Shown here: piece after piece, positions 31,301-44,346 of the stretch
Numbering within the stretch: the stretch's first letter is position 1
Layout of the letters: each line of letters begins with the position of its first letter
Made by a program: the position numbers and the translations under genes
Source: Anthoceros angustus
Taxonomy: Eukaryota; Plantae; Anthocerotophyta
Length of the DNA: 64,000 nt
Direction: 5' to 3'
Assembly: GCA_010909165.1 (NCBI GenBank)
Contig: VJWM01000126.1
Location: forward strand, 744,001 to 808,000
Notes under the pieces: model-generated
The model's input: only the letters and a program-made list of their open reading frames with translations
Databases searched by the model: none
What the model was told of the DNA's origin: nothing

Positions 31301-34300
31301 ACTATTGCAGAGGAGGATGCTATTGCAGCAGAGTCCATGCGAGATGCTGCACTACGGGATGGTGCCCTGCTACGGCATCTGGTTCATGCATTCTTCCTAG
31401 GTCCGGGTGAACGGCGGGATGTAAGCCGGCAGCTTGTTGCTTTGTGGGCAGATGCTCATCAGCCTGCACTGGATCTTCTTTCAAGGGTCTTGCCACCTGG
31501 ACTGGTTGCATATCTTCACACTCGTGCTTCTGAGGAGGACGAGGATGAAACCCTGGTGCAGGCATCGTCAGGCACTTTTGCTGCCCGGCGAAAGCAGAGA
31601 CGCATCTTACAAAGGCGACGTGGACGTGGGTTTAGACTGAAGACCCAATCTACTGGAAGTACGGAGAGCCCGTCTGATCAAATCACAGCTGCTGCAAATG
31701 GCAATGCACAAGCAGGACACCTCACCCAGCCTATTGCCACAGTTCCTGCGTCTTTTAGCGCTCCCAATTCCCAGGAAAACGTTTCAATGACAGATAGTGC
31801 ACCAAGCTCAGCCCCCAACCAGTTTTTTAATGTGCCAATTGCACCTGGGGACACTGAAATACCCGGCAATTCTGCACTTCAACCAATATTTCCTGCCCCT
31901 GCACAGGTCATAGCCGAGAATGTGGCAGTGGGGCTTGGGCGGCTTATTTGTAATTGGCCAGAATTTTGGCGAGCGTTCGCTCTGGATCATAGTCGTGCTG
32001 ATTTAATCTGGAATGAGAGGACACGACAAGAACTTCGAGAAGCCCTACAAGCTGAGGTACATCATCTGGATGTGGAGAAGGAGCGGACAGCAGATGTCCG
32101 AATACTAGGTGAGGATGGAGAGAGTGAAGAAACATCCAATCAGCTTTCCTGGAACTATGCTGAATATGCTGTACGATATCCAAGTCTTTCCAAAGAAGTC
32201 TGTGTGGGAGAGTATTATCTTAGACTCCTCCTTGATGGTGGGGGGAGTACATCCAGTCGAGCTCAGGATTTCCCGCTAAGAGACCCTGTTCTATTTTTTA
32301 GGGCATTGTATCATCGCTTCTTGTGCGATGCAGACATTGGTCTCACTGTTGAAGGCGCGGATGGTGAAGACTTAGGAGCCTCTGGAGACTGGTGTGACAT
32401 GGGAGGGCTAGATGGTTTTGGTGGTGGTGGTGGATCTTCTGTGAGAGAGCTTTGTGCTAGAGCAATGGCGATTGTGTATATGCAGCACTATCAGGCCATT
32501 GGGGCATTTGATGGAACTGCACATATTACTGTACTCATAGATCGCACCAATGACAGGGCACTACGGCACAGATTATTGCTTCTTTTAAAGGTATGTTGCT
32601 AGTACCTCCCTGATTCTCTTGAACAAAACTGTGGATCTATTTGCTAGAAACGTTATGGCCTCTTGACTTATTGCTAATATTGTGTTGACTCATGCAGGTG
32701 CTCATGCTTGTTCCTGCCAATGCTGAGTCTTGTGTGGCAGTTGGTGGCTGCTCTTTAGCAGTAGATCTTCTCACAACCGCCCACGAAGCTTCAGAGCGAA
32801 CAGTGGTGCCTTTGCAATCAAACATGATCGCGGCCTCTGCATTTGTTGAACCCCAAAAGGAGTGGTTTTATGTCAACAAGGACGGGGATGAAGTTGGACC
32901 TTTGGAGAAAGATGCAATGAGGCGAGCTTGGTCCAAACACGAGATTGATTGGAATTCTAAATGTAGGGCGGCAGGCGTGACCGATTGGAAAAGACTGAGG
33001 GATATTCGAGAACTGCGGTGGGCTCTGGCAACAAGAGTAGCTGTTTTGACACCTGTCCAGGTATTCATTGGGTTGGTTAGTTGTTGAGTAACTGATTCAG
33101 ATCAACAGTTTCCGCATGCGCTGAACAGGTAGTATCTTCACTATCTTGTAGGTCGGAGAGGTTGCTTTGTCTATTTTGCACAGCATGGTGGCTGTTCACT
33201 CGGATCTGGATGATGCTGGGGAGCTTGTGACACCAACTCCAAAAGTCAAGCGCATTCTTTCCAGCTCAAGCTGCCTCCCTCACGTGGCTCAGGTATGGAC
33301 CCCTCTATCAGTCTTGTCAATGTGCGGACGCTTGACTTTATGGGTTGTTATCTTGAGTACTGAGAACTAGTGTTGGCAGGCGGTTTTAACAGGAGAACCT
33401 GCCATTGTTGAAGGCGCCTCTTCATTGTTGAAAGCAATAGTTACACGTAACCCGAAAGGGATGGCAAGGCTATACAGCACTGGTGTTTTCTATTTTGCCT
33501 TAGCATATGGTGGTTCAAACCTTGCTTCTGTTGCAAGTCTCTTTGCTGCTACTCATGCACGCCAAGCATTTCATGGTGGTGCTGAAGCTGCTGTGTCTTC
33601 TTCTCTTCCCCTGGCAAAACGAAGTGTACTTGGGGGCCTTTTGCCTGAATCACTTCTCTATGTATTGGAAAGGGGTGGGTCTGCTGCTTTTGCAACTGCC
33701 ATGATAGCTGATTCAGACACTCCAGAGATTGTTTGGACACACAAGATGCGAGGCGATCGATTGATAGATCAGGTACATGCTGTGGATGCTTTCAAGTGGT
33801 ACAATCTGAGGTTCCCAGTTCGTGCTGCTCATACTCTGGTGATGTCATTTGGTTGTTCTAGGTGCTGAAGCACCTGGGAGATTTTCCTCAAAAGCTTGCA
33901 CAACACTGTCACAGCTTGTATGACTATGCACCAATGCCCCCCGTGACTTACCCAGAGCTTCAAGATGAGATGTGGTGCCACCGGTACTATCTTCGAAATT
34001 TATGTGACGAGATTAGGTTTCCTGATTGGCCAATTGTGGAGCATGTTGAGTTTCTCCAGTCTCTACTTGCTATGTGGCGTGAGGAGTTAACAAGGAGGCC
34101 CCTAGACCTATCGGAAGAAGATGCATGCTCCATACTGGAAATCTCCCTGGACGAAGGTCCGCCTCAGGGTGAAGCCATGGTTCTGAATGGCAAAGGCCAA
34201 GCAGAAGGTGAGGAGGAGGTTAGAGTAGTGAGCAAAATATTTGGGCGTGTTGATGAAGAGGTCCTCAAGAGACAGTACCGGAAGCTGGCTATGAAATATC

Positions 34301-37300
34301 ATCCAGACAAGAATCCAGAAGGACGAGAAAAGTTTGTGGCCGTCCAAAAGGCTTATGAGCGTCTTCAGGTATCCATGGAACCTGAGCTTTGCTGGTGTTG
34401 CTATGGGGAATGAATTTGTACCCTCAATCTGTATGAAGAAAGATGTATGTTCGCCTCCAATTGACAGCACTATTACATTGCTTCATCCCCATTGTTCATC
34501 CTTGTCTTGTGCTGAGTTGGGACACCTGCATGCAGGCAACTCTTCAAGGTCTGCAAGGTCCTCAGCCCTGGAGATTGCAGCTGTTGCTTAAAGGCCAGTG
34601 CATCCTTTTCCGACGATATGGGGCTGTTCTTGAGCCTTTCAAGTATGCTGGCTACCCGATGTTGCTGAATGCAATCACTGTTGACCCTGAAGATAACAAC
34701 TTTCTCTCCCCCGAACGTGCACCACTTCTGGAGGCAGCCTCAGAGCTCATATGGCAAACGTAAGTTTTTGATAGCAGAAGGGGAAGAACGTTTTTGTAAC
34801 CATCGTATTCCATCTTTCTTGTACCTGCATCTTTTGCTTGGATTGCCAGTTAACATGTATTTTCAAAGCAGGTGTGTCTCATCTGCTCTCAATGGTGAAG
34901 AACTCGTAAGAGATGGAGGGGTTTCATTGCTGGCAACACTGTTGTCCCGTTGTATGTATGTTGTACAACGTGGTACACCGGCAAGTGATCCTGCAGCAGT
35001 GATCGTCACAAATGTAATGCGCACATTTGCAGGGTTAAGCACTTTCGAAAGTGCTAGGAAGGAGATGCTTAAGTGCCCTGGGTTTGTTGTCGATGTTGTT
35101 CACTGTTCGGAGCTTGAGCTTGCAACAGTAGCAGTGGATGCTGCCCTGCAGACAATTGGCCAGCTTGCTGCGTCGCCTGAATTGCAAGGCTGGTTGCTTC
35201 GGGCAGGTGTTATGTGGTATGTGTAACTGATCTTCCTGAGCAATGTAGTTATATAGTTACAGTTGCTGAGCAATATGTGTTGCCGCTGAGGGATCCTGGT
35301 TCCATTTCATCTTGGGGCTTGTTTGCGTTTCAGGTACCTTCTGCCTTTGCTCTTACAGTATGACGCTACAGCAGAAAGCGCGGAAACAACAAACCAGCCT
35401 GGCATGGGAAACAACGTTCAAAGTGCCAAAAATATGCATGCAATGTTGTCAGTTCGGGCTCTGGCAAGACTTGGTGGGTTCCTGAGTGGTGAGCTAGCTA
35501 CGCCACAAAATCCAGTGGCTGCTACTGCACTAAAATCTCTTCTAACTCCCAAGCTAGCAGACATGCTTGGTGATAAGTCTCCCAGGGAGCTACTTCGAAA
35601 TCTGAACTCAAATTTGGAGTCACCCCAGGTAAGGGTGCAATATATTAGCGTCTAAGATCATAACCAATGTGGTAGGGCCGTGATTGTAATGAGCTCATTT
35701 CTTCTTCTTCTTCTTTTATCATATTGGCAGGTTATCTGGAATTCTGCCACCCGTGGTGAACTCCTTAAGTTTGTGGATCAGCAACGTGTGTCACAGCTAG
35801 CAGATGGGTCTTACGATATGGATCTTGCACAGCAATTTAAGTACAAGACCCTATCAGATGAATTGCATGTGGGGGATGTTTATTTGCGTGTGTACAACGA
35901 GCAGCCAGATTTTGAAATAAGCCACCCTGACATCTTCTGTGATGCCCTACTGGACTTTATAAGTGAGATTGTAGAAGAGAGGAAAAAACGACTCAGTTCA
36001 GAGGGTAGTGAACACGGGGCAGAAGCAGGAGAAGAAGCTTCAGAGTCACCTGCAGGTGGCCCAGTTACTGATAGCTTAGGCCAAGAAATCTTAGCGTCTG
36101 AGGAGAACCTTACTGGCAGTCCTGTTAATGTCTCTGATGATCAAGCTACAGGCCTGGACCTGGAGGCAGAGATCCTTGTGAAGCACCTTGTGATGGCTTT
36201 GACATCACTCCTGGTTCGTATCTCTTCTCTGTGTGTGTGTTTTTCGCTTTTATGACTGGCAAATACTTCATGCTAATGTGAACATGTGGTCTGCAGAATA
36301 TCCTCACTGCCTACCCTGATCTTTCATCCACCTTTTCATCCAAGCACCAAATTGCTCCACTTCTAGGTTGCCTGGTTGATACTGGCGCAGCAAGTGGTGA
36401 TGTACCTCAGTTGTGCTTGAACGTCCTATCCCGACTCACCACACATGCCCCATGTGTGGAGGCCATGGTTGCTGACAGGTCGGGTCTGCTTCTGCTCTTG
36501 CAACTGCTTCATTGTGCCCCAACGTGCAGGCTTGGAGCATTGCGACTCTTGTATGCTCTGGCAAGTACATCAGAGCTGGCTTGGTCAGCAGCCAAGCATG
36601 GTGGGGTTGTGTACATTCTCCAACTTCTTCTGCCCGCACAAGGTCTGGTTTGTTTTGCTTTACTTCGCTAGCTGGAGTTTGTATGCTTTGGTCTTGTTAC
36701 AAGTCAGTGAAAGGCTTCCCGTTCTTATGCTTGCTTCATCATCTCGTGCAGAGGAAGTTCCCCTGCAACAAAGGGCTGCAGCTGCTTCACTGCTGGGGAA
36801 ACTGGTAGGACAGCCAATGCATGGACCACGTGTGGCCATCACGGTGGCCAGGTTCCTACCAGACGGACTTGTCTCTGCTATACGAGACGGTCCCGGGGAG
36901 GCAGTTGTTACAGCCCTTGAGTTAAGTACAGAGACACCTGAGCTTGTGTGGAGTCCAGCTATGGCAGCTTCTCTAGGGGCGCAATTGGCCACAATGGCTG
37001 CCGATTTGTACCGTGAACAAACAAAAGGGCGTGTGGTGGAATGGGACCTCCCAGAACACACGTCAGGGCAACAGGATATGCGTGATGAACCTCAGGTGAA
37101 TTGGTGCCTGCTTTATGCACAAGACGACTGGGCAACTTTTGTTAGTTTCTAGCTTAGCCTCCTTCCGCCAATAGTGTTCACTAGCTAAGTATTTTTCTCC
37201 TAGTATATCTGTCCTAACATTGGCTGTTGCTGCTACATTGTCCTGGTGCAGGTGGGTGGTGTATACGTTCGCCTCTTCCTCAAAGATCCAAAGTTCCCAC

Positions 37301-38648
37301 TCAGAAACCCTAAACGGTTTCTTGAAGGTCTTCTGGATCAATATGTTGCTGCAGCTGCTGCTACTCATGCCAAAGGAGCACAAGCCGCAGATCCGAAGTT
37401 GCCATTGCTTCTCTCAGCCGCACTCGTGTCTCTTTTAAGGGTGCAACCCATGCTGGCAGACCATGTTGGGCATTTAGGCTATGTTCCTAAGCTGGTATCG
37501 GCAATGGCAAATGAGGGCCGCATTGAAAGCTTAGCCCCTGGGGATGTGGCTCTGAAACCATCTAGTCCTACTGAGGGTCTGTGGGAACTTGAGGATGGAG
37601 ATGGTAGTGGAGGTGGCCAGACACCGCAGGAACAGGTACGGCATAGTTGCTTACGTGTTCTGCATCAACTTGCAGCCAGTACCCCCTGCGCTGAAGCCAT
37701 GGCAACACCGGGCATGGGCACACCACAGGTGAAAATCTTGAAGCGTTTTTCCTACAATCTTCTAGACGACTGAATAGCATGACTGACCAATACCAGGACT
37801 GACTTCTTCCCCTTCCACCTTTGGCTGCAGGTGGTGCCCTTACTCATGAAAGCCATAGGTTGGCACAGGGGAAGTGTGCTGGCATTAGAGACTCTGAAGC
37901 GTGTGGTAGTCGCCGGAAATCGAGCTCGTGATTCATTAGTGGCACAGGGCCTGAAGTAAGGCCTAGAAAAAGCTTGTTGAGCTCTTCAACATGCAACTCT
38001 CTGGGGTACTAACGGTGAGAAAACCCCTGCAACTGCAGGGTCGGCCTGGTACAAGTTCTTCTGGGGTTACTTGACTGGAGAGCCGGGGGCAAGAACGGGT
38101 TATGTGCCCAGATGAAGTGGAATGAATCAGAAGCAGCAATTGGTCGAGTACTGGCTGTGGAGGTACAAACTTTGAACTCACCTGTGATGTCTATTCAGAC
38201 ATCATCGATTCCAGCTGTTACTATTCCCTAAACCGTCTATCCACTTCAAGTGTCGACTGATCTTTATTTTTGTGAAGGTGCTACTTGCCTTCGCTGGAGA
38301 AGGCACACATTCTGCTAGAGTCCAGGACATCTTGAACTCATCAGACGTAAGCACCCGATCCTTCTTTCAGAACAGTCAGGATGTTCTTTCGACTCTATCC
38401 GTCTATATGTGTGAACAATCTCAAAGTGAATGCCAATTGTTCTGCAGGTTTGGGTGGCGTACAAAGATCAGAAACACGATCTCTTTTTGCCGTCCAACGC
38501 ACAATCTGCTGCAGCGGGAGTTGCAGGCCTTATAGAAGATTCAGCGGGAGTGACATACGCACTTCCTGCGCCGTCTGCTCGGTCAGCTCTAGTGAGAGTT
38601 TCCATGGCCAGTAGCTCAACGGAGGACCCCCGGCATGTTGATGAGTAA
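28341..38648 (+). CDS. GRV2: DnaJ homolog subfamily C GRV2/KAM2 (RME-8 orthologue), ~22 exons
   Basis: Motifs include EEPEYLARYMVTKHSWRGKYKRILCIS, IWN repeats (ADLIWNERTRQEL, IVWTHKMR, VIWNSATR, LVWSPAMA), a GYF_2-like EWFYVNKDGDEVGP, the J-domain LKRQYRKLAMKYHPDKNPEGREKF and the C-terminal VWVAYKDQKHDLFLP. Confidence 0.97.
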
Positions 38649-39584
38649 CTGCAGCTAATTCTCCATCATCAAAATACGAAGATCAAGTCCAAGAGAGAGC
38701 CGAAAGTGAGGCAGTCTCCAATCGCACAGGAGACTCCCGTCTTCTTCAAAACATTCAGCTCTCCCCGCCTGGCTCTCGGCGTTTACAGGTCTTTGGGCGG
38801 CTGGAAGGCCTCACAACAGGAGCATGACTGGTGCTTTCCCTGAATGCATTACCTTGTGGTAATGAGTTTGTTAACACCTCTTCTGGATGTGATGCAGAGT
38901 GTTGTGGCTTTAAGTTTGCTGCTAGCATATTTGCGTTGTAGCTGTAGCTGGCCAGCTATGGTGACGAAGATGTCCCTAAACTCTAAACCCTAGTTTCTGC
39001 TGCCGGGCAAGACGGATTTCCCATGTTGCATTCCGGATATTGTACAATGCCTTCTTCCAACTTTCCTCCAGTTATTTTTGCTGGGTGTTGTCAACTCTGT
39101 ACACCTAGGTACTGACACAGTGACTCTGCTCAGTGCACGCATATATTTTACATGGGTTTACCGGCCTCGTGTCATTGAAGTGGGTAATGCGCTTTCGATA
39201 AAAATTCCACGTGCGGGTTTCGTCGGTGGCTATCACCGGAAGAGCTCTGTACGCGTACAGCACCTCCTCACAGCTCGGTCTCCGATCTTCGATCTCCTCC
39301 TGTCGTCACCTGCAGTCCTTCACCGCGCTGCCCTTGTGCTGAGCTGAGCCACTGTCCGGCTGCACAGTATCTCGTCACGAGCCCCTTGGACGGAGCTGCG
39401 CAAGTGCCGCATTATTGGTTGCTTCACGCTCAGCTCCACAAGCGTCTGCGGATTCCGCCTTGTCCTTCGCATTCTGGTGTGCTGTTGTGGTGGCCTTCGG
39501 TGAATGTGACTAGCCGATGGAGATGGCGGCGTAGTGCATGGACTTGAGTATTGTTGTTGTTGCGCGCGTACTGAGCTGGCGTAG

Positions 39585-42500
39585 CCACTATTAGCGACAA
39601 GGGAAGCCAAAACGGCGTGGAAACGGGAGAATCTGCGGGTCAATCTTTCCTCTGCTCGGTCTATCGAGGAGACAGGCTTGGACTCGTTGCTGAATGGAGG
39701 CGGAAGTCATTTCTTCACACCGCATGAGACGTTTAAAGCGGCTCAAAAAGCCTCGAGCAAGGCCTCGGAAGAGAGCCTTGTGAGAGACGGCACTGGATCG
39801 GGCACCGGGCACCAGCGGGCCCGAGAGTTGTTTTTTGATGCATCTGAATCTATTAAGTCGGATGCGCAATGTAGCAAGCATGCAGCTACCAGTGAGCATG
39901 GGAAGGGGGGTAGAAAGCGGGCCAGAAAACCGAGGGCTGGTACCGCTGATCCGGAAAATGAGGTAAGGACTGGGGACGGAGCGTCAGCTGAGGATGGTGT
40001 GCAGCTGGAGGATCTGACTGTGCCTGCGAGTAGAACGGAGGAGAGAGGAAAAGATGGTGCGAGCTCGAGGAAGAGCAAAATCCCTGTCAGCAAGCTTCCA
40101 GGGGCTTTCAGAAATGTAGGTGTGCAGGTGAACCTGGGGGCGCGGGCTACTAGGACTGTAAGCATGGTTCAGCAAGTGGAGTCAGGAGCAGGGCTGATAG
40201 GTGTGGGAGAAGAAGGGAGAGTTCTCTACGATGAGGCAGAGTCCTCCGCAACCTCGTCATCTTCTGGTGTTCAAAGGGGTATTGAGGTTGATAGTCCTTC
40301 AGTTGGCTTGGATGGAACGGTGGAGGCAGCAGTGCTTTCCAATAACCAAGGTGATGAAGGTGCACAAGGTCCTAACACCGTTGCTGCCAGCTTGGGCCAT
40401 GGAAGAATGCCACTGGACCCGATGGATGCTTTCATGCCTGCGAACTTTGTACCGGTGGTTTGCCCTGTCACGGATCCACCAGATGTTAATCTGACTCCTG
40501 AAAGTTCGCCTACAATTGGAGCTCGGACCAGGTGGCGACGGCTTAGGCACACTGTGGCTTTTGCTACTCATATGGCCAATATCAGAGCTGCCTCCAGTGA
40601 TTTGCTCGAGAACAGGGGGGGTGGTACAGCTGCGTTTGAGGGGGCAGACACAGTTGCAGCTCGGTGGAGGCCTAGGGGTAGACAAGGCATGGAGAGCATG
40701 ATAGTCAGACAGGAAAAGAGTTTCCTTTCATTTTTTCAAGACTTCTATGTCGCTTGCTTGAAGGTTCGTTATTCTGCGCAAGTTCACTTGGGATGGCTAT
40801 TGGACAAGGATAAAAAGTAAGTTGCTTCAGTTGTATGCAGATGCCTATCAATCATTTCCTTATCGCCGTCTTCCTTGCACCTGTTGCATTGGGATTGTTC
40901 TTCACCCCATTCTATTTACTGGATACCGCTGGACTTAACTTTGACGAAGCCAACAAGAACGATCACAGTGAAAGCCAAGTGCAATCAGCAAGGCAAACAG
41001 TTTCTATTGTTGTGAATGTATTTCTTTATGCGTAAGTAAGATTGTCCTTTGGCAATTGCAATGGCATGGACTTGTTCAAATGTGTTTAAACAACTATTAT
41101 GTGACTGGAATCGATTGGCAGCTGCTGGAGAGTCTGACAGATTGGTTGGATTGCAGATTATCATTGTCCACGACCTTTGGAGGTTCTCCAGTTACTGCTT
41201 TCTCACCATTTTGTCTTCTTGTCGGAAATGTGAACACTCTTTTGGCACAATTCTTGTTTGTGTTCCTCAGTGGGGCTGGTGAGTCGGAGATGACCACTTT
41301 AGCTCTGTCTCAGTTTCTAGGCAAGCTTACAGCCTGCCCAGCTGAGAACGGAGACCCTGGGATATGTATTGTGCAGTTTTTGCCCGCATGTCACAACCGT
41401 CTCACCCTGTGCGCTGCTCAAAGAAAGCTGTGATCAGGGAAGGTGACTTTGTGCCTTCAGTTGACGATACGAAAGAGAGATTCCGGTAAGCTTTTTGTGA
41501 CATGACAGATCTTTTGACCTAGCTGCCGTGCCAGCAATCTGGTAGTCGAGTAAATGTCTGCTGTCTCGTCCAACCTTGTTTCAGAGTTTTGGCAGTACGT
41601 TTAGTGCTCACTGGGCCACCGCCGTGCGAGCTGGTGGATGCAAAGATTTGCCTCATTTTCAGGATATTTATCAAGCTTCCAACAGGTTCTATGTTTTGCA
41701 CCACACAGAACCTGAACCTTCTCCGCTCAGAGGTGAGTTGCATGGTTCCTGGGCTTTACACATAGCTACATCAGCGCGTGATGCTTAGAGCCTCAGAATG
41801 ATTGTCCTTGACAGGTGTCCTATTTGCGGTACGGTATCATGGTACGCCATGTAATCGACAGAGACAGCCCTGTTTACGGGTATACCATGAAAACTCTGGA
41901 GGACGGAGATGCCTCGTTCTCCTTGACTATTATGGCTTTGGAACGCACCTCAATGCAACCCATCTTTCATTTGGAGGTGCAGTTTCTGTTCGAGCTTTCT
42001 CTTGCACGAATTATCCTGGAAACTTGGGCAGCTGATGTTTCTTGGGCCATCCTGTCCAGGACTACTTTGTACATGACGGTGATGTAGTGTGGGATGGAGA
42101 CTACGAGGACTTCATAACCCTGAACCCCAAAGGTCAAAGGGTCCTTGATCACTCGAAGATCGACGCTCTGAGACCATTCAAGGTGCCCAGATAAACTGTC
42201 TTTCAACACTTGCGTTCGACCGGTCTTCCCTCACCAGAGAATGACTTGGTGCCTGCTGTCCTGCAGGTCGCGGGCATTGTTAGTCAGGCCATCACCAGAA
42301 TGGAAGGGAATGTGGCCAAGCGCAAGGAGCAGGATGCCGGGAACTCCAAAGTGCCGTCGGCTAATTCCGAGCCCACTGCTGCTGCAGCTGCTCATCAGGA
42401 ACCTTCTCAAGGAGATTTCGCTTTAGAGCAGAAGGTTCTGAACAGGTGGGTGAGTGGGCTTCGAAACCGAAAGCTGTGGGAGATCAAATCCTCGTCCTTC

Positions 42501-42599
42501 ACCAGGGCACCCAGTGATCATGCAGTCCGGTTTCAATCGACACCCCGACCTAAGCCCCCTGAAATGATAGCGGAAGCGGATTCAGGGACAGGCAGCTAG
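39585..42599 (+). CDS. Inward-rectifier (Kir/IRK, KirBac-like fold) ion channel with long disordered N-terminus; 5' start uncertain. Exons ~39585-40763, 40841-41031, 41157-41278, 41377-41486, 41585-41732, 41816-41976, 42060-42182, 42267-42599
   Basis: The spliced product has a slide helix (FFQDFYVACLKMP), M1, pore helix/filter VFLYALSLSTTFGGSP and M2 ending GAVFARMSQP. The cytoplasmic domain follows with VRCSKKAVI, LAVRL, LVDAKI, MVRHVIDRDSPVYG, FSLTIMALERTSMQ and DVVWDGDYEDFI, colinear with Kir2/KirBac motifs (GAVMAKMAKP, FSHNAVI, IVHEIDEDSPLY, EILWGHRYEP). Confidence 0.85.
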
Positions 42600-42838
42600 T
42601 AAGGCACTGCTGACCTTCATGATTCCGATAGTTTACGATTCAAAAAATGGCAAACGGTCCTGTGGTAGGCTAATGACACAGTTTCTCTTGACTGATCTAG
42701 CAGGCCTACACACCCTCCGTGAAGACTGATGGAGAATAAAATCGCCTCTCCCGGTAATACGAGAGCAACTAAATGACGAGCCGAAGCATGTGGGCATGTA
42801 CAGGACCTCTCCCGTACAGCAAGGACACGAAACATGTA

Positions 42839-44346
42839 TCAATTCTTGATCAGCTTCTGCGGAGGGTGTGCTTGACCCTGCACCGGCTCCTGCCGCCGTT
42901 TCCTCGAGACGTGGGGATCTATCGACCGCGCCCGGCTGTAGTTGAATTGCGCCAAGGATGCATCTACTTCTGGATGCTCCGCAAGAAACCTGAAGGCAGC
43001 CAACATCAGAAGCTTCCAAATGGCCAACAGAGACTCAGCCTAAAGTGATCTGCAAAGGGTAGGATTGCAGCCGAAAACTCACTTGATTACGTCATTCATC
43101 GACCTAAGCGTCTTGCCATCAGGAGTGACGTAGTACCTGCATCCAAAATTCGCGCGTTTAGGCAAATATGTACTGCAACACGAGAGATGTGAAAGAGATG
43201 ACAGTGGAGGGAAGCTTACACGTCTGAGAATATGGTTGAGCCTTCCCCGCGGATGACAACCTTTCTCTCCCAACCAGGAGGGGGCTGAGCGATATTGGAC
43301 TTGTCTATCGCCCACACGAAGCCCACATCACCGAGGGAGATTTCTGCTTCCTGGGCGCAGGAGGAGCCGGGGCTCCATTGGTCCGCATATTCACACCTAA
43401 AAGGATGCCTCGAGTTCATCGCCCTGATGTACTCGTATACCTGCTGGTTGGGAGCCCACCTCCACTTGCCGCATTCACAGCACTGCACAATGTAGGAGCC
43501 AACAGTGCAAGCCGGCCGGCGGGGGCCATCGTGCAGAGTCCGGATGTTCTTCCCGCTGCCAGTACCTGGAGCTGGCCGCACTGCTTGCAGACTGAAACCT
43601 GGGCCGCTCCCCCCTGGTTCTCTTGCGGCCAGAGGCATGGGGGTCGCCTGCGATAATGGATGACTGATGATGGCTCCCTGAGAAGCTCCATTCTGAAATC
43701 CTGAGGAAGCTCCAAGCTGCCCCCACTCTGCCGCAGCCTTGGCGAGGGCCACTTCCCGGCATGCTGCAGCCTCGGGCCCCACGGCTGCTGTTCCATAGAT
43801 CACCTCTGCCTTGGGAACAACCAGCACCTTCTCCTTCTCCTTCTCCTTCGCCCGAACCATCACCATCCCAGCAACAGCATGATGTGCACTCCACCCCGGC
43901 CCCTGCTGCAGCACGGCATCTGGAAACAAATGCCGATTCCCATTCTGGGGAGTAATCGGACTCCTACCTGCAGGCTTCCCATCCAGCAGCGCAGCTGGTG
44001 GAGGCTTGACAGAAGAATCGGACGACTCATCATCCGAGATGCAGATCACCTCCCTGCCATCCACCCTGGGACTCGGAACTGGCAGCCCCATCTCCATCAC
44101 TACATCCTCTGCGGGTGCCACCAAGCCCGGTGCCGGGCCCATCTCTCCATCCCCCTGCCCAATAGCAGAATCAACTTCCTCCATGGACAGCCCCATCTCC
44201 ACATCCTCCTCCTCCACTGACAAGCACTCCGTTTTCACCTTCACCGAACTCAGAGCAACCAAATGCCCGCCTGCAGCAGACTGCTCAGCCATGGCCCCCG
44301 GCCCCTTTCCGCCACTCACCAACCTCCCAGCTTCAGCAACCCACAT
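42839..44346 (-). CDS. Methyl-CpG-binding domain protein with CW-type zinc finger (MBD1/2/4-like), 3 coding exons
   Basis: The zf-CW reads YIVQCCECGKWRW...PFRC...SC. The MBD reads WAIDKSNIAQPPPGWERKVVIRGEGSTIFSDV|YYVTPDGKTLRSMNDVIK|FLAEHPE. The start is ATG 44346 or 44292. Confidence 0.88.

Follow-up and report, generated by a model that had tools for sequence, protein, structure and literature searches.

The window analysed here, a stretch of 64,000 nucleotides from Anthoceros angustus (contig VJWM01000126.1, positions 744,001 to 808,000), carries on its forward strand, from about position 39384 onwards, a transcribed nine-exon gene for a channel-like protein. The predicted product belongs to a streptophyte protein family, here called clade A, which profile comparison and structure prediction have shown to possess the complete KirBac/Kir fold: a pre-M1 strand, a slide helix, a first transmembrane helix (M1), a pore helix, a second transmembrane helix (M2) and a cytoplasmic beta domain. 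The K+ filter of that fold is replaced in clade A by a TTFGG[S/A]P loop. Judged from the alignments, this loop is an ancient constrained signature, and not decay or a change in this copy, because it is nearly invariant across the family back to Chlorokybus and Closterium.

To our knowledge, textbooks credit land plants with Shaker, TPK and a few other K+ channel types, and with no true Kir-fold channels. The gene described here encodes a complete KirBac-like protein that is expressed in a bryophyte, within a slowly evolving family reaching from Chlorokybus to conifers. That the K+ signature has been replaced by an equally conserved loop points to a different, selected permeation property and not to decay. 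The family offers channel biophysics a natural experiment on the role of the GYG residues in a Kir scaffold, and plant physiology a candidate conductance in Marchantia, Physcomitrium, Selaginella, Ceratopteris and gymnosperms, which are tractable or sequenced models.

Family membership, gene model and start of translation

Membership of the family was assessed by searches run exon by exon or with database orthologues. An exhaustive HMMER search with exon 6 returned 63 matches, many of them full length, and the matched orthologues mapped back colinearly by tblastn onto the end of exon 1 and exons 2-7. The core sequences of 31 orthologues were aligned (alignment A1) and a profile was built from them. 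Exons 1-7 tile the A1 profile consecutively (positions 21-68, 69-131, 133-172, 174-205, 211-259, 260-313 and 314-354), with expectation values (E) per exon from 5e-13 to 2e-32. Because the exons match consecutive profile positions, the exon boundaries are validated and the gene is a complete family member; on this comparison, chance is excluded as an explanation of the exon match. The family residue is kept in window exons 1-7 at 40 of the 40 invariant A1 columns. Eight rows flagged in that check are artefactual, exon 8 having been forced onto the alignment without homology, and V173 of the alignment corresponds to a split codon (G, then TT).

Core identity between the window protein and orthologues from mosses, ferns, lycophytes and Ginkgo is about 69-73%. 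The best matches exon by exon all belong to clade A, at the same ~69-73%, and exon 3 reaches 87.5% identity to several orthologues. For the window's own protein, no database match closer than about 73% in the core was found. Both the LSLSTTFGG[S/A]P loop and the QFLFVFLSGAVFARMSQP M2/linker segment are read in window exons 3-4.

The stretch 39300-42900 was read directly and the coding model was rebuilt by hand and with a script. Eight coding exons join in frame to give 789 codons with one terminal stop, and GT..AG borders are present at every intron of the coding model. Transcript evidence was taken from spliced contigs of four runs from four organisms (X1, X2, X16 and X17), mapped to 39400-42800. 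Run X1 contains 70% of the sampled words of the stretch and many runs of other organisms about 15%; the X1 contig shows 0 differences from the window, and about 3-7% of positions are different in X2, X16 and X17. Although no RNA record goes with these runs, their contigs represent complementary DNA, because they are intron-less with GT..AG joints. The contigs of all four runs lack the introns and jointly confirm 7 of the 7 modelled junctions, including both junctions that flank the filter exon (41157-41278), and X1 and X2 each show all seven inside one contig.

The divergence from the transcripts of the related species is 2.4-3.4% in exons 3-7, about 5% in exon 1, about 5% in exon 2 and about 7% in exon 8. 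A loose end of X16 at 41031 is the start of the relative's exon 3; it carries three changes in the LSLSTTFGGS codons (TTG>TTA, ACC>ACA and GGA>GGT), all of them synonymous. A sequence-only reading of this DNA had proposed eight GT-AG exons joined in frame and an intact gene. The script model and the contigs of the four organisms agree with it on both counts and add that the gene is expressed. Different splicing across 41157-41278, which it had named as a possible objection, was not observed, as all four runs splice this region alike.

Position 39585 is not an exon start, because the X1 transcript is colinear from before 39400; the frame merely opens there after the TAG at 39582-84. A ninth, non-coding exon is present after the intron at 42599-42703, and the stretch is a transcribed gene of nine exons. 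Its features are as follows.

39384-39611 (+): transcript 5' leader with an approximate 5' end; X1 contig colinear with the window, starting 16 nt ahead of 39400 and reaching 40761
39585-40763 (+): open frame of exon 1, a long and poorly conserved N-terminal extension; donor at 40764 confirmed by contigs
39612-39614 (+): ACG codon, candidate non-AUG start, aligned to the conifer initiator Met; strong context, with A at -3 and G at +4
39615-39686 (+): conserved N-terminal motif AWKRENLRVNLSSARSIEETGLDS, from tblastn and regular-expression matches to the extreme N-termini of orthologues
40617-40763 (+): last ~49 codons of exon 1, conserved pre-M1 strand and slide helix; residues 345-393 match profile 21-68
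40841-41031 (+): exon 2, M1, variable turret and start of the pore helix; profile 69-131, both junctions in contigs
41157-41278 (+): exon 3, last part of the pore helix, the filter loop and the greater part of M2; profile 133-172 at E 6e-24, junctions in contigs
41170-41187 (+): loop codons T-T-F-G-G-S in place of the K+ filter; direct reading and KirBac1.1 alignment
41377-41485 (+): exon 4, last part of M2, containing (G)AVFARMSQP, and the initial strands of the cytoplasmic domain; profile 174-205 and KirBac1.1 alignment
41585-41732 (+): exon 5, cytoplasmic beta domain; profile 211-259 at E 1e-24
41815-41976 (+): exon 6, core of the cytoplasmic beta domain; IRK_C at E 0.0033, KirBac1.1 residues 225-266 at E 0.05, profile 260-313 at E 2e-32
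42060-42182 (+): exon 7, end of the cytoplasmic domain; profile 314-354
42267-42598 (+): exon 8, poorly conserved C-terminal tail ending in TA of the stop codon; sequence and X1 contig (42599 in the first model)
42599-42703 (+): intron 8 (GT..AG), inside the stop codon; X1 joint 42598 to 42704
42704-42800 (+): exon 9, 3' untranslated region, running past the mapped stretch; X1 depth in the bin 42706-42800

Exon 8 showed no homology to the family core in the profile and alignment comparisons. The stop codon is split by the 105-nt intron 42599-42703: exon 8 ends in TA, exon 9 starts with G, and splicing restores TAG. In the X2 and X17 contigs, AAT is found at the split-stop site and is followed by seven more codons to a TGA; the C-terminus therefore differs between close species.

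At the other end, the N-terminal extension is long (~340 residues), disordered, and tipped by a conserved motif of about 25 residues. In conifers, a lycophyte and several unnamed sequences, the orthologue N-terminus reads (M)AW[RK]RENLRxRLxSARSIEETGLDS, and the clade A motif (M)AW[KR]RENLR..SARSIEETGLDS is present at 39615-39686 of the window (compared with P0011, P0065, P0068-P0071 and P0097). Because this protein-level motif matches the N-termini of conifer, Selaginella and other orthologues, the region 39615-39686 must be translated. Direct reading found no in-frame ATG from the TAG at 39582-84 to about 40159. The leader contains two short out-of-frame upstream open reading frames (39517-39534 and 39538-39594), the upstream ATGs at 39517, 39523 and 39538 being out of frame and closed by stops. 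The window reads ...KTAWKRENLR where P0011 and P0065 read MAWRRENLR, and initiation at the non-AUG codon ACG 39612-39614 is probably the simplest reading.

That the frame has no ATG from the TAG at 39582 up to about 40159 could also be taken as the mark of a transcribed pseudogene that lost its start codon, with ACG where its relatives have ATG. We regard this as very improbable, since the 789-codon frame is intact, all invariant family residues are kept, and the N-terminal protein motif that precedes the first ATG is conserved with conifers and Selaginella. In addition, no difference at ACG 39612-39614 is listed in the printed transcript rows of the three related species, whose core exons are conserved. 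The TAG at 39582 that closes the frame in the window is CAG in these three species (T>C), and their frame is therefore open further upstream, still with no in-frame ATG within the mapped part. A plastid transit peptide was considered and is unsupported, as the extreme N-terminus is a conserved motif and not a variable Ser/Thr-rich leader.

Kir fold and filter loop

Single-exon searches were near-blind to the fold because single exons are too short. With Pfam only exon 6 gave a match (IRK_C, E 0.0033, 17.5 bits, with a cut-off of 22.5), and the same exon alone found KirBac1.1 and KirBac3.1 in the PDB at E 0.05-0.2; it was the sole exon recognised singly by Pfam or the PDB. Exon 3, which holds the filter, and exon 5 found nothing when searched singly against the PDB with phmmer. 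When the A1 profile was compared with all PDB sequences, 50 matches were obtained at E<=1, of which 49 are Kir channels. The strongest were KirBac1.1 (E 4e-16) and KirBac3.1 (3e-15), with Kir6.1 at 5.5e-9, Kir6.2, Kir2.x, Kir4.1 and Kir5.1 between 5e-8 and 2e-5, and GIRK2 at about 1e-4. The Kir6.x alignments cover profile positions 36-350, that is, the transmembrane and cytoplasmic domains, and the alignment to KirBac1.1 extends through residue 307.

The orthologue cores gave a divided result with Pfam. IRK_C (PF17655), the cytoplasmic beta domain of immunoglobulin-like type, was found in all 31 of them (best E 6.8e-7), and IRK (PF01007) in 20 of the 31 at E<=1, with a best score of 16.5 bits. 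Full-length orthologues matched IRK_C only, at 17-29 bits; IRK matched no window exon and, at E<=0.01, no full-length orthologue. Of the two Pfam models named in the sequence-only reading, IRK_C was thus recovered in the orthologue cores and was sub-threshold in exon 6 of the window, and IRK stayed below its gathering score. Taking profile and model comparisons together, the Kir fold and the superfamily relationship are well supported, and formal Pfam membership of the transmembrane domain is sub-threshold.

The structure was predicted by AlphaFold2 run on A1 with a fern orthologue (P0073:383-743) as first row. The model of the fern core has a predicted local distance difference test (pLDDT) value of 77 and a predicted template modelling score of 0.64. 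It shows a predicted slide helix, M1, pore helix and M2 (helices at 55-67, 71-94, 118-137 and 149-177) and a beta-rich C-terminal domain. Foldseek against the PDB placed KirBac3.1 first (E 7e-22, template modelling score by target 0.76-0.85, ~305 columns at 20% identity), followed by KirBac1.1, Kir2.2, Kir6.2, Kir4.1 and Kir7.1.

Four copies of the transmembrane part of the fern orthologue (A1 residues 40-182) were also predicted together. The tetramer scored 0.66 against 0.00 for the best control, a pass that may reflect the model's memory of solved Kir tetramers; the mark of this complex test is reached by 21 of 30 same-chain solved pairs and by 0 of 23 solved single chains. The runs share at least 56% of contacts, with a partner pLDDT of at least 69, and the predicted interface brings the pore helix and loop of one copy (126-143) to the M2 of its neighbour (149-174), as in K+ channels. 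We take this prediction as a likeness, not as a proof.

Read directly, the codons at 41170-41187 are ACG ACC TTT GGA GGT TCT, or T-T-F-G-G-S. In the A1 profile alignment TTFGGS falls on A-T-V-G-Y-G of KirBac1.1, and GAVFARMSQP falls on GLVFARFARP, the Phe at 41379-41381 being the counterpart of the gate residue F146. Among the non-redundant sequences, the residues following LSLS-T are TFGGSP in 50, TFGGAP in 16 (ferns and Chlorokybus included) and other in nine, which come, where identified, from streptophyte algae, a lycophyte and unnamed transcript assemblies. GYG or GFG at the filter position was found in no clade A member.

The sequence-only reading had described a Kir architecture from slide helix to cytoplasmic beta domain, with a TTFGGS filter regarded as rewired, retained in a seed-free plant. 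The architecture is recovered by the profile, the model and Foldseek, and the TTFGGS codons were read correctly and sit exactly on the TxGYG positions. The loop is nevertheless not peculiar to this copy, LSLSTTFGG[S/A]P being almost invariant back to Chlorokybus and Closterium, and the lineage is not confined to seed-free plants, for Cryptomeria, Taxus and Ginkgo have it. The comparison of orthologue loops suggested there is the one counted above, and the outcome it had feared, orthologues carrying GYG beside a copy under relaxed selection, is ruled out by the lack of GYG in the clade and the constraint on the loop.

Other pore residues are also kept. The GxVFARxxxP gate region is retained with its gate Phe, and the face of M2 is invariant or nearly so at Asn156, Asn158, Thr159, Gln163 and Ser170. 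Phe166, also invariant, occupies the M2 position aligned with KirBac1.1 I138, which we take to be the site of Kir2.1 D172, the controller of rectification. There is no acidic residue after the loop (GGSPVxAxSP), and the basic linker is reduced to QPSxPIR. Together, the Phe and the reduced linker offer no more than an indirect hint on inward rectification and on dependence on PIP2.

Proposed permeation mechanism

On balance we lean towards a gated, KirBac-like tetrameric pore that selects K+ over Na+ weakly or not at all and shows no strong polyamine rectification. Four subunits would form the gated pore. In K+ channels, the outer filter sites S1 and S0 are shaped by the aromatic of GYG together with its second Gly. 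Clade A has other residues in place of the filter-anchoring Tyr and the second Gly, and it lacks the Glu/Arg pair that is specific to the Kir filter surroundings; we infer that a canonical four-site K+ filter is impossible because of these differences. The pore would then most likely conduct cations with little preference for K+ over Na+, as do NaK (GDG) and the cyclic nucleotide-gated (CNG) pores, in which such replacements leave a vestibule and give non-selective conduction. NaK (TVGDG) and CNG (TIGE) pores have the K+-channel architecture with the GYG residues replaced and the outer filter sites lost. Their likeness to clade A is a functional analogy alone; they belong to a different sequence family with different loops, and no homology is claimed. 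Strong polyamine rectification is not expected, because the inner pore would present uncharged polar residues and a Phe, not an acid, at the controller position.

The same loop can be read as that of a pore that is still K+-selective, the family then being a divergent plant Kir whose T-T-F-G-G backbone is filter-like. In its favour, the loop begins with T-T-F-G, four residues that T-x-G would allow; pore helix, M2 and gate show KirBac-like conservation; and the loop is under strong purifying selection, so it matters functionally. We nevertheless think this reading unlikely, as the aromatic and the second Gly of GYG/GFG are both replaced in every member, and it is these two positions that hold the outer sites S1 and S0.

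The absence of any acid from the outer mouth behind the loop, and an inner pore lined by Asn, Thr, Gln and Ser and not by charged residues, would also suit a Kir scaffold that conducts something other than small cations, for example anions, water or a small solute. This appears improbable to us, since the pore-helix geometry of the fold favours cations and no conserved basic ring was seen in the transmembrane part.

A further alternative would give the protein a non-conducting or modulatory role, either by co-assembly with a subunit of the sister clade that carries STGLQP at the loop or as a scaffold or sensor acting through its cytoplasmic domain and long N-terminus. Both of these filter-less clades occur in the same taxa and neither was found in angiosperms, and the long regulatory-looking tails and the conserved N-terminal motif would fit such a role. 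However, the elements that a working pore would need do not vary in the family: the lower Gly and the gate Phe, the linker GxVFARxxxP and the polar face of M2. The predicted transmembrane homotetramer of the fern orthologue also passes its control test, a result in which memory of solved Kir structures may have a part. We hold the modulatory role to be doubtful for these reasons.

Several points weigh against the gated, weakly selective pore that we prefer. Backbone-carbonyl filters can tolerate some substitutions, so that K+ selectivity could be retained. The fold and the tetramer were predicted on a fern orthologue, with a core about 72% identical, and not on the window product. The IRK transmembrane model never reached its gathering score (best 16.5 against 22.7 bits), and IRK_C lies at or below threshold in many members. 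Finally, we infer the translation start in a window that has no in-frame ATG upstream of the N-terminal motif.

Distribution and related proteins

By their source names, clade A members come from gymnosperms (Cryptomeria, Taxus and Ginkgo), ferns (Adiantum and Ceratopteris), lycophytes (Selaginella and Diphasiastrum), mosses (Physcomitrium, Ceratodon and Sphagnum) and liverworts (Marchantia Mp1g10960, Riccia and Calypogeia), with relatives in the streptophyte algae Klebsormidium, Chlorokybus, Closterium, Spirogloea and Mesotaenium. Their database names are either 'hypothetical' or the automatic 'IRK C-terminal domain-containing'. Among the 84 word-search matches and the exhaustive-search matches with a traceable source there was no member from angiosperms or chlorophytes, which is not a proof of absence. 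A recent bacterial transfer is unsupported, as the conserved peptides of the clade were found in 0 of 185,579 prokaryotic species genomes, a search that did not extend to distant KirBac relatives. A quick midpoint-rooted tree, from which the window sequence was left out, separated the land-plant clade A (Shimodaira-Hasegawa-like approximate likelihood ratio test 99), the GLQPE clade (98) and a loose algal group. The branches within clade A are short and follow the species groups.

The closest relative of any kind is this GLQPE sister clade, whose loop reads LSLSTGLQPE. Its fold family and its LSLST loop start agree with those of clade A, and so do its taxa, which range from streptophyte algae to seed-free plants; angiosperm members were likewise not found. 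It differs from clade A as a separate clade with about 40-45% core identity, a different loop and longer N-terminal regions. In three of its members (P0034, P0108 and P0119) the N-terminal region contains apolipoprotein/ApoLp-III-like helical repeats, sub-threshold in Pfam and present among precomputed domains. Among the algae, Closterium P0014, P0036 and P0125-P0127 are further Kir-fold paralogues with a third loop, L[TS][VL]ASGFAFP.DSPEF. The loop is MYGGSP in Spirogloea P0059, and TTLGGGG and TTLGCE occur in unnamed transcript assemblies. The algal loop diversity therefore exceeds the two land-plant clades.

Of the solved structures, KirBac1.1 and KirBac3.1 (PDB 1p7b, 1xl4 and 7n9k) are closest and are the best matches of clade A both by sequence profile and by fold. 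Their elements follow one another as in the plant protein (slide helix, M1, pore helix, M2, beta domain), but their identity to the plant protein is only ~20%, their filter is TVGYG where TTFGGS is found here, and they lack the plant protein's ~340-residue N-terminal extension and ~110-residue C-terminal tail. The animal channels Kir2.2, Kir6.1/6.2, Kir4.1, Kir3.2 and Kir7.1 are more distant. Fold and domain order are common to both groups and both domains align, but the matches are weaker than those to KirBac (E 5e-9 to 1e-4) and the plant protein has no GYG. Strong rectifiers of animals have an Asp in M2 where the plant family has Phe, as placed through the alignment to KirBac1.1 I138, and the animal KPKKR linker contrasts with QPSxPIR.

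In plant papers 'Kir-like' denotes KCO3, a truncated TPK that is found in Arabidopsis only and lacks a Kir cytoplasmic domain (PMC3694395). KCO3 is unrelated to clade A; the two have in common only the 'Kir' label and a topology of two transmembrane helices and one pore. The K+ channels of Physcomitrella and Selaginella were inventoried by screening with the pattern [ST]-x-x-T-x-G-[YFL]-G-[DE] (PMC3410407). The family was plausibly overlooked because its TTFGG[S/A]P loop fails this pattern. We found no study of the family or of its accession names in the literature, in a search whose coverage left out most subscription journals. Already known are the fold and, from automated annotation, the IRK_C flag; not yet described are the function of the family, its distribution and the conserved non-K+ loop.

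We therefore put forward, tentatively and with more doubt than confidence, that clade A is an overlooked class of Kir-fold channels of non-flowering streptophytes, whose invariant TTFGG[S/A]P loop would represent a permeation mechanism undescribed for the tetrameric P-loop superfamily. It may work together with the STGLQP clade, both having been lost towards the angiosperms, and would have been missed by inventories based on the T-x-G-[YFL]-G motif.

Upstream of the channel gene and on the same strand lies a multi-exon DnaJ-domain gene of the RME-8/GRV2 type (33862-38650, +; DnaJ E 2e-12, with a weak RME-8_N match), which ends about 700 nt before the start of the channel transcript.

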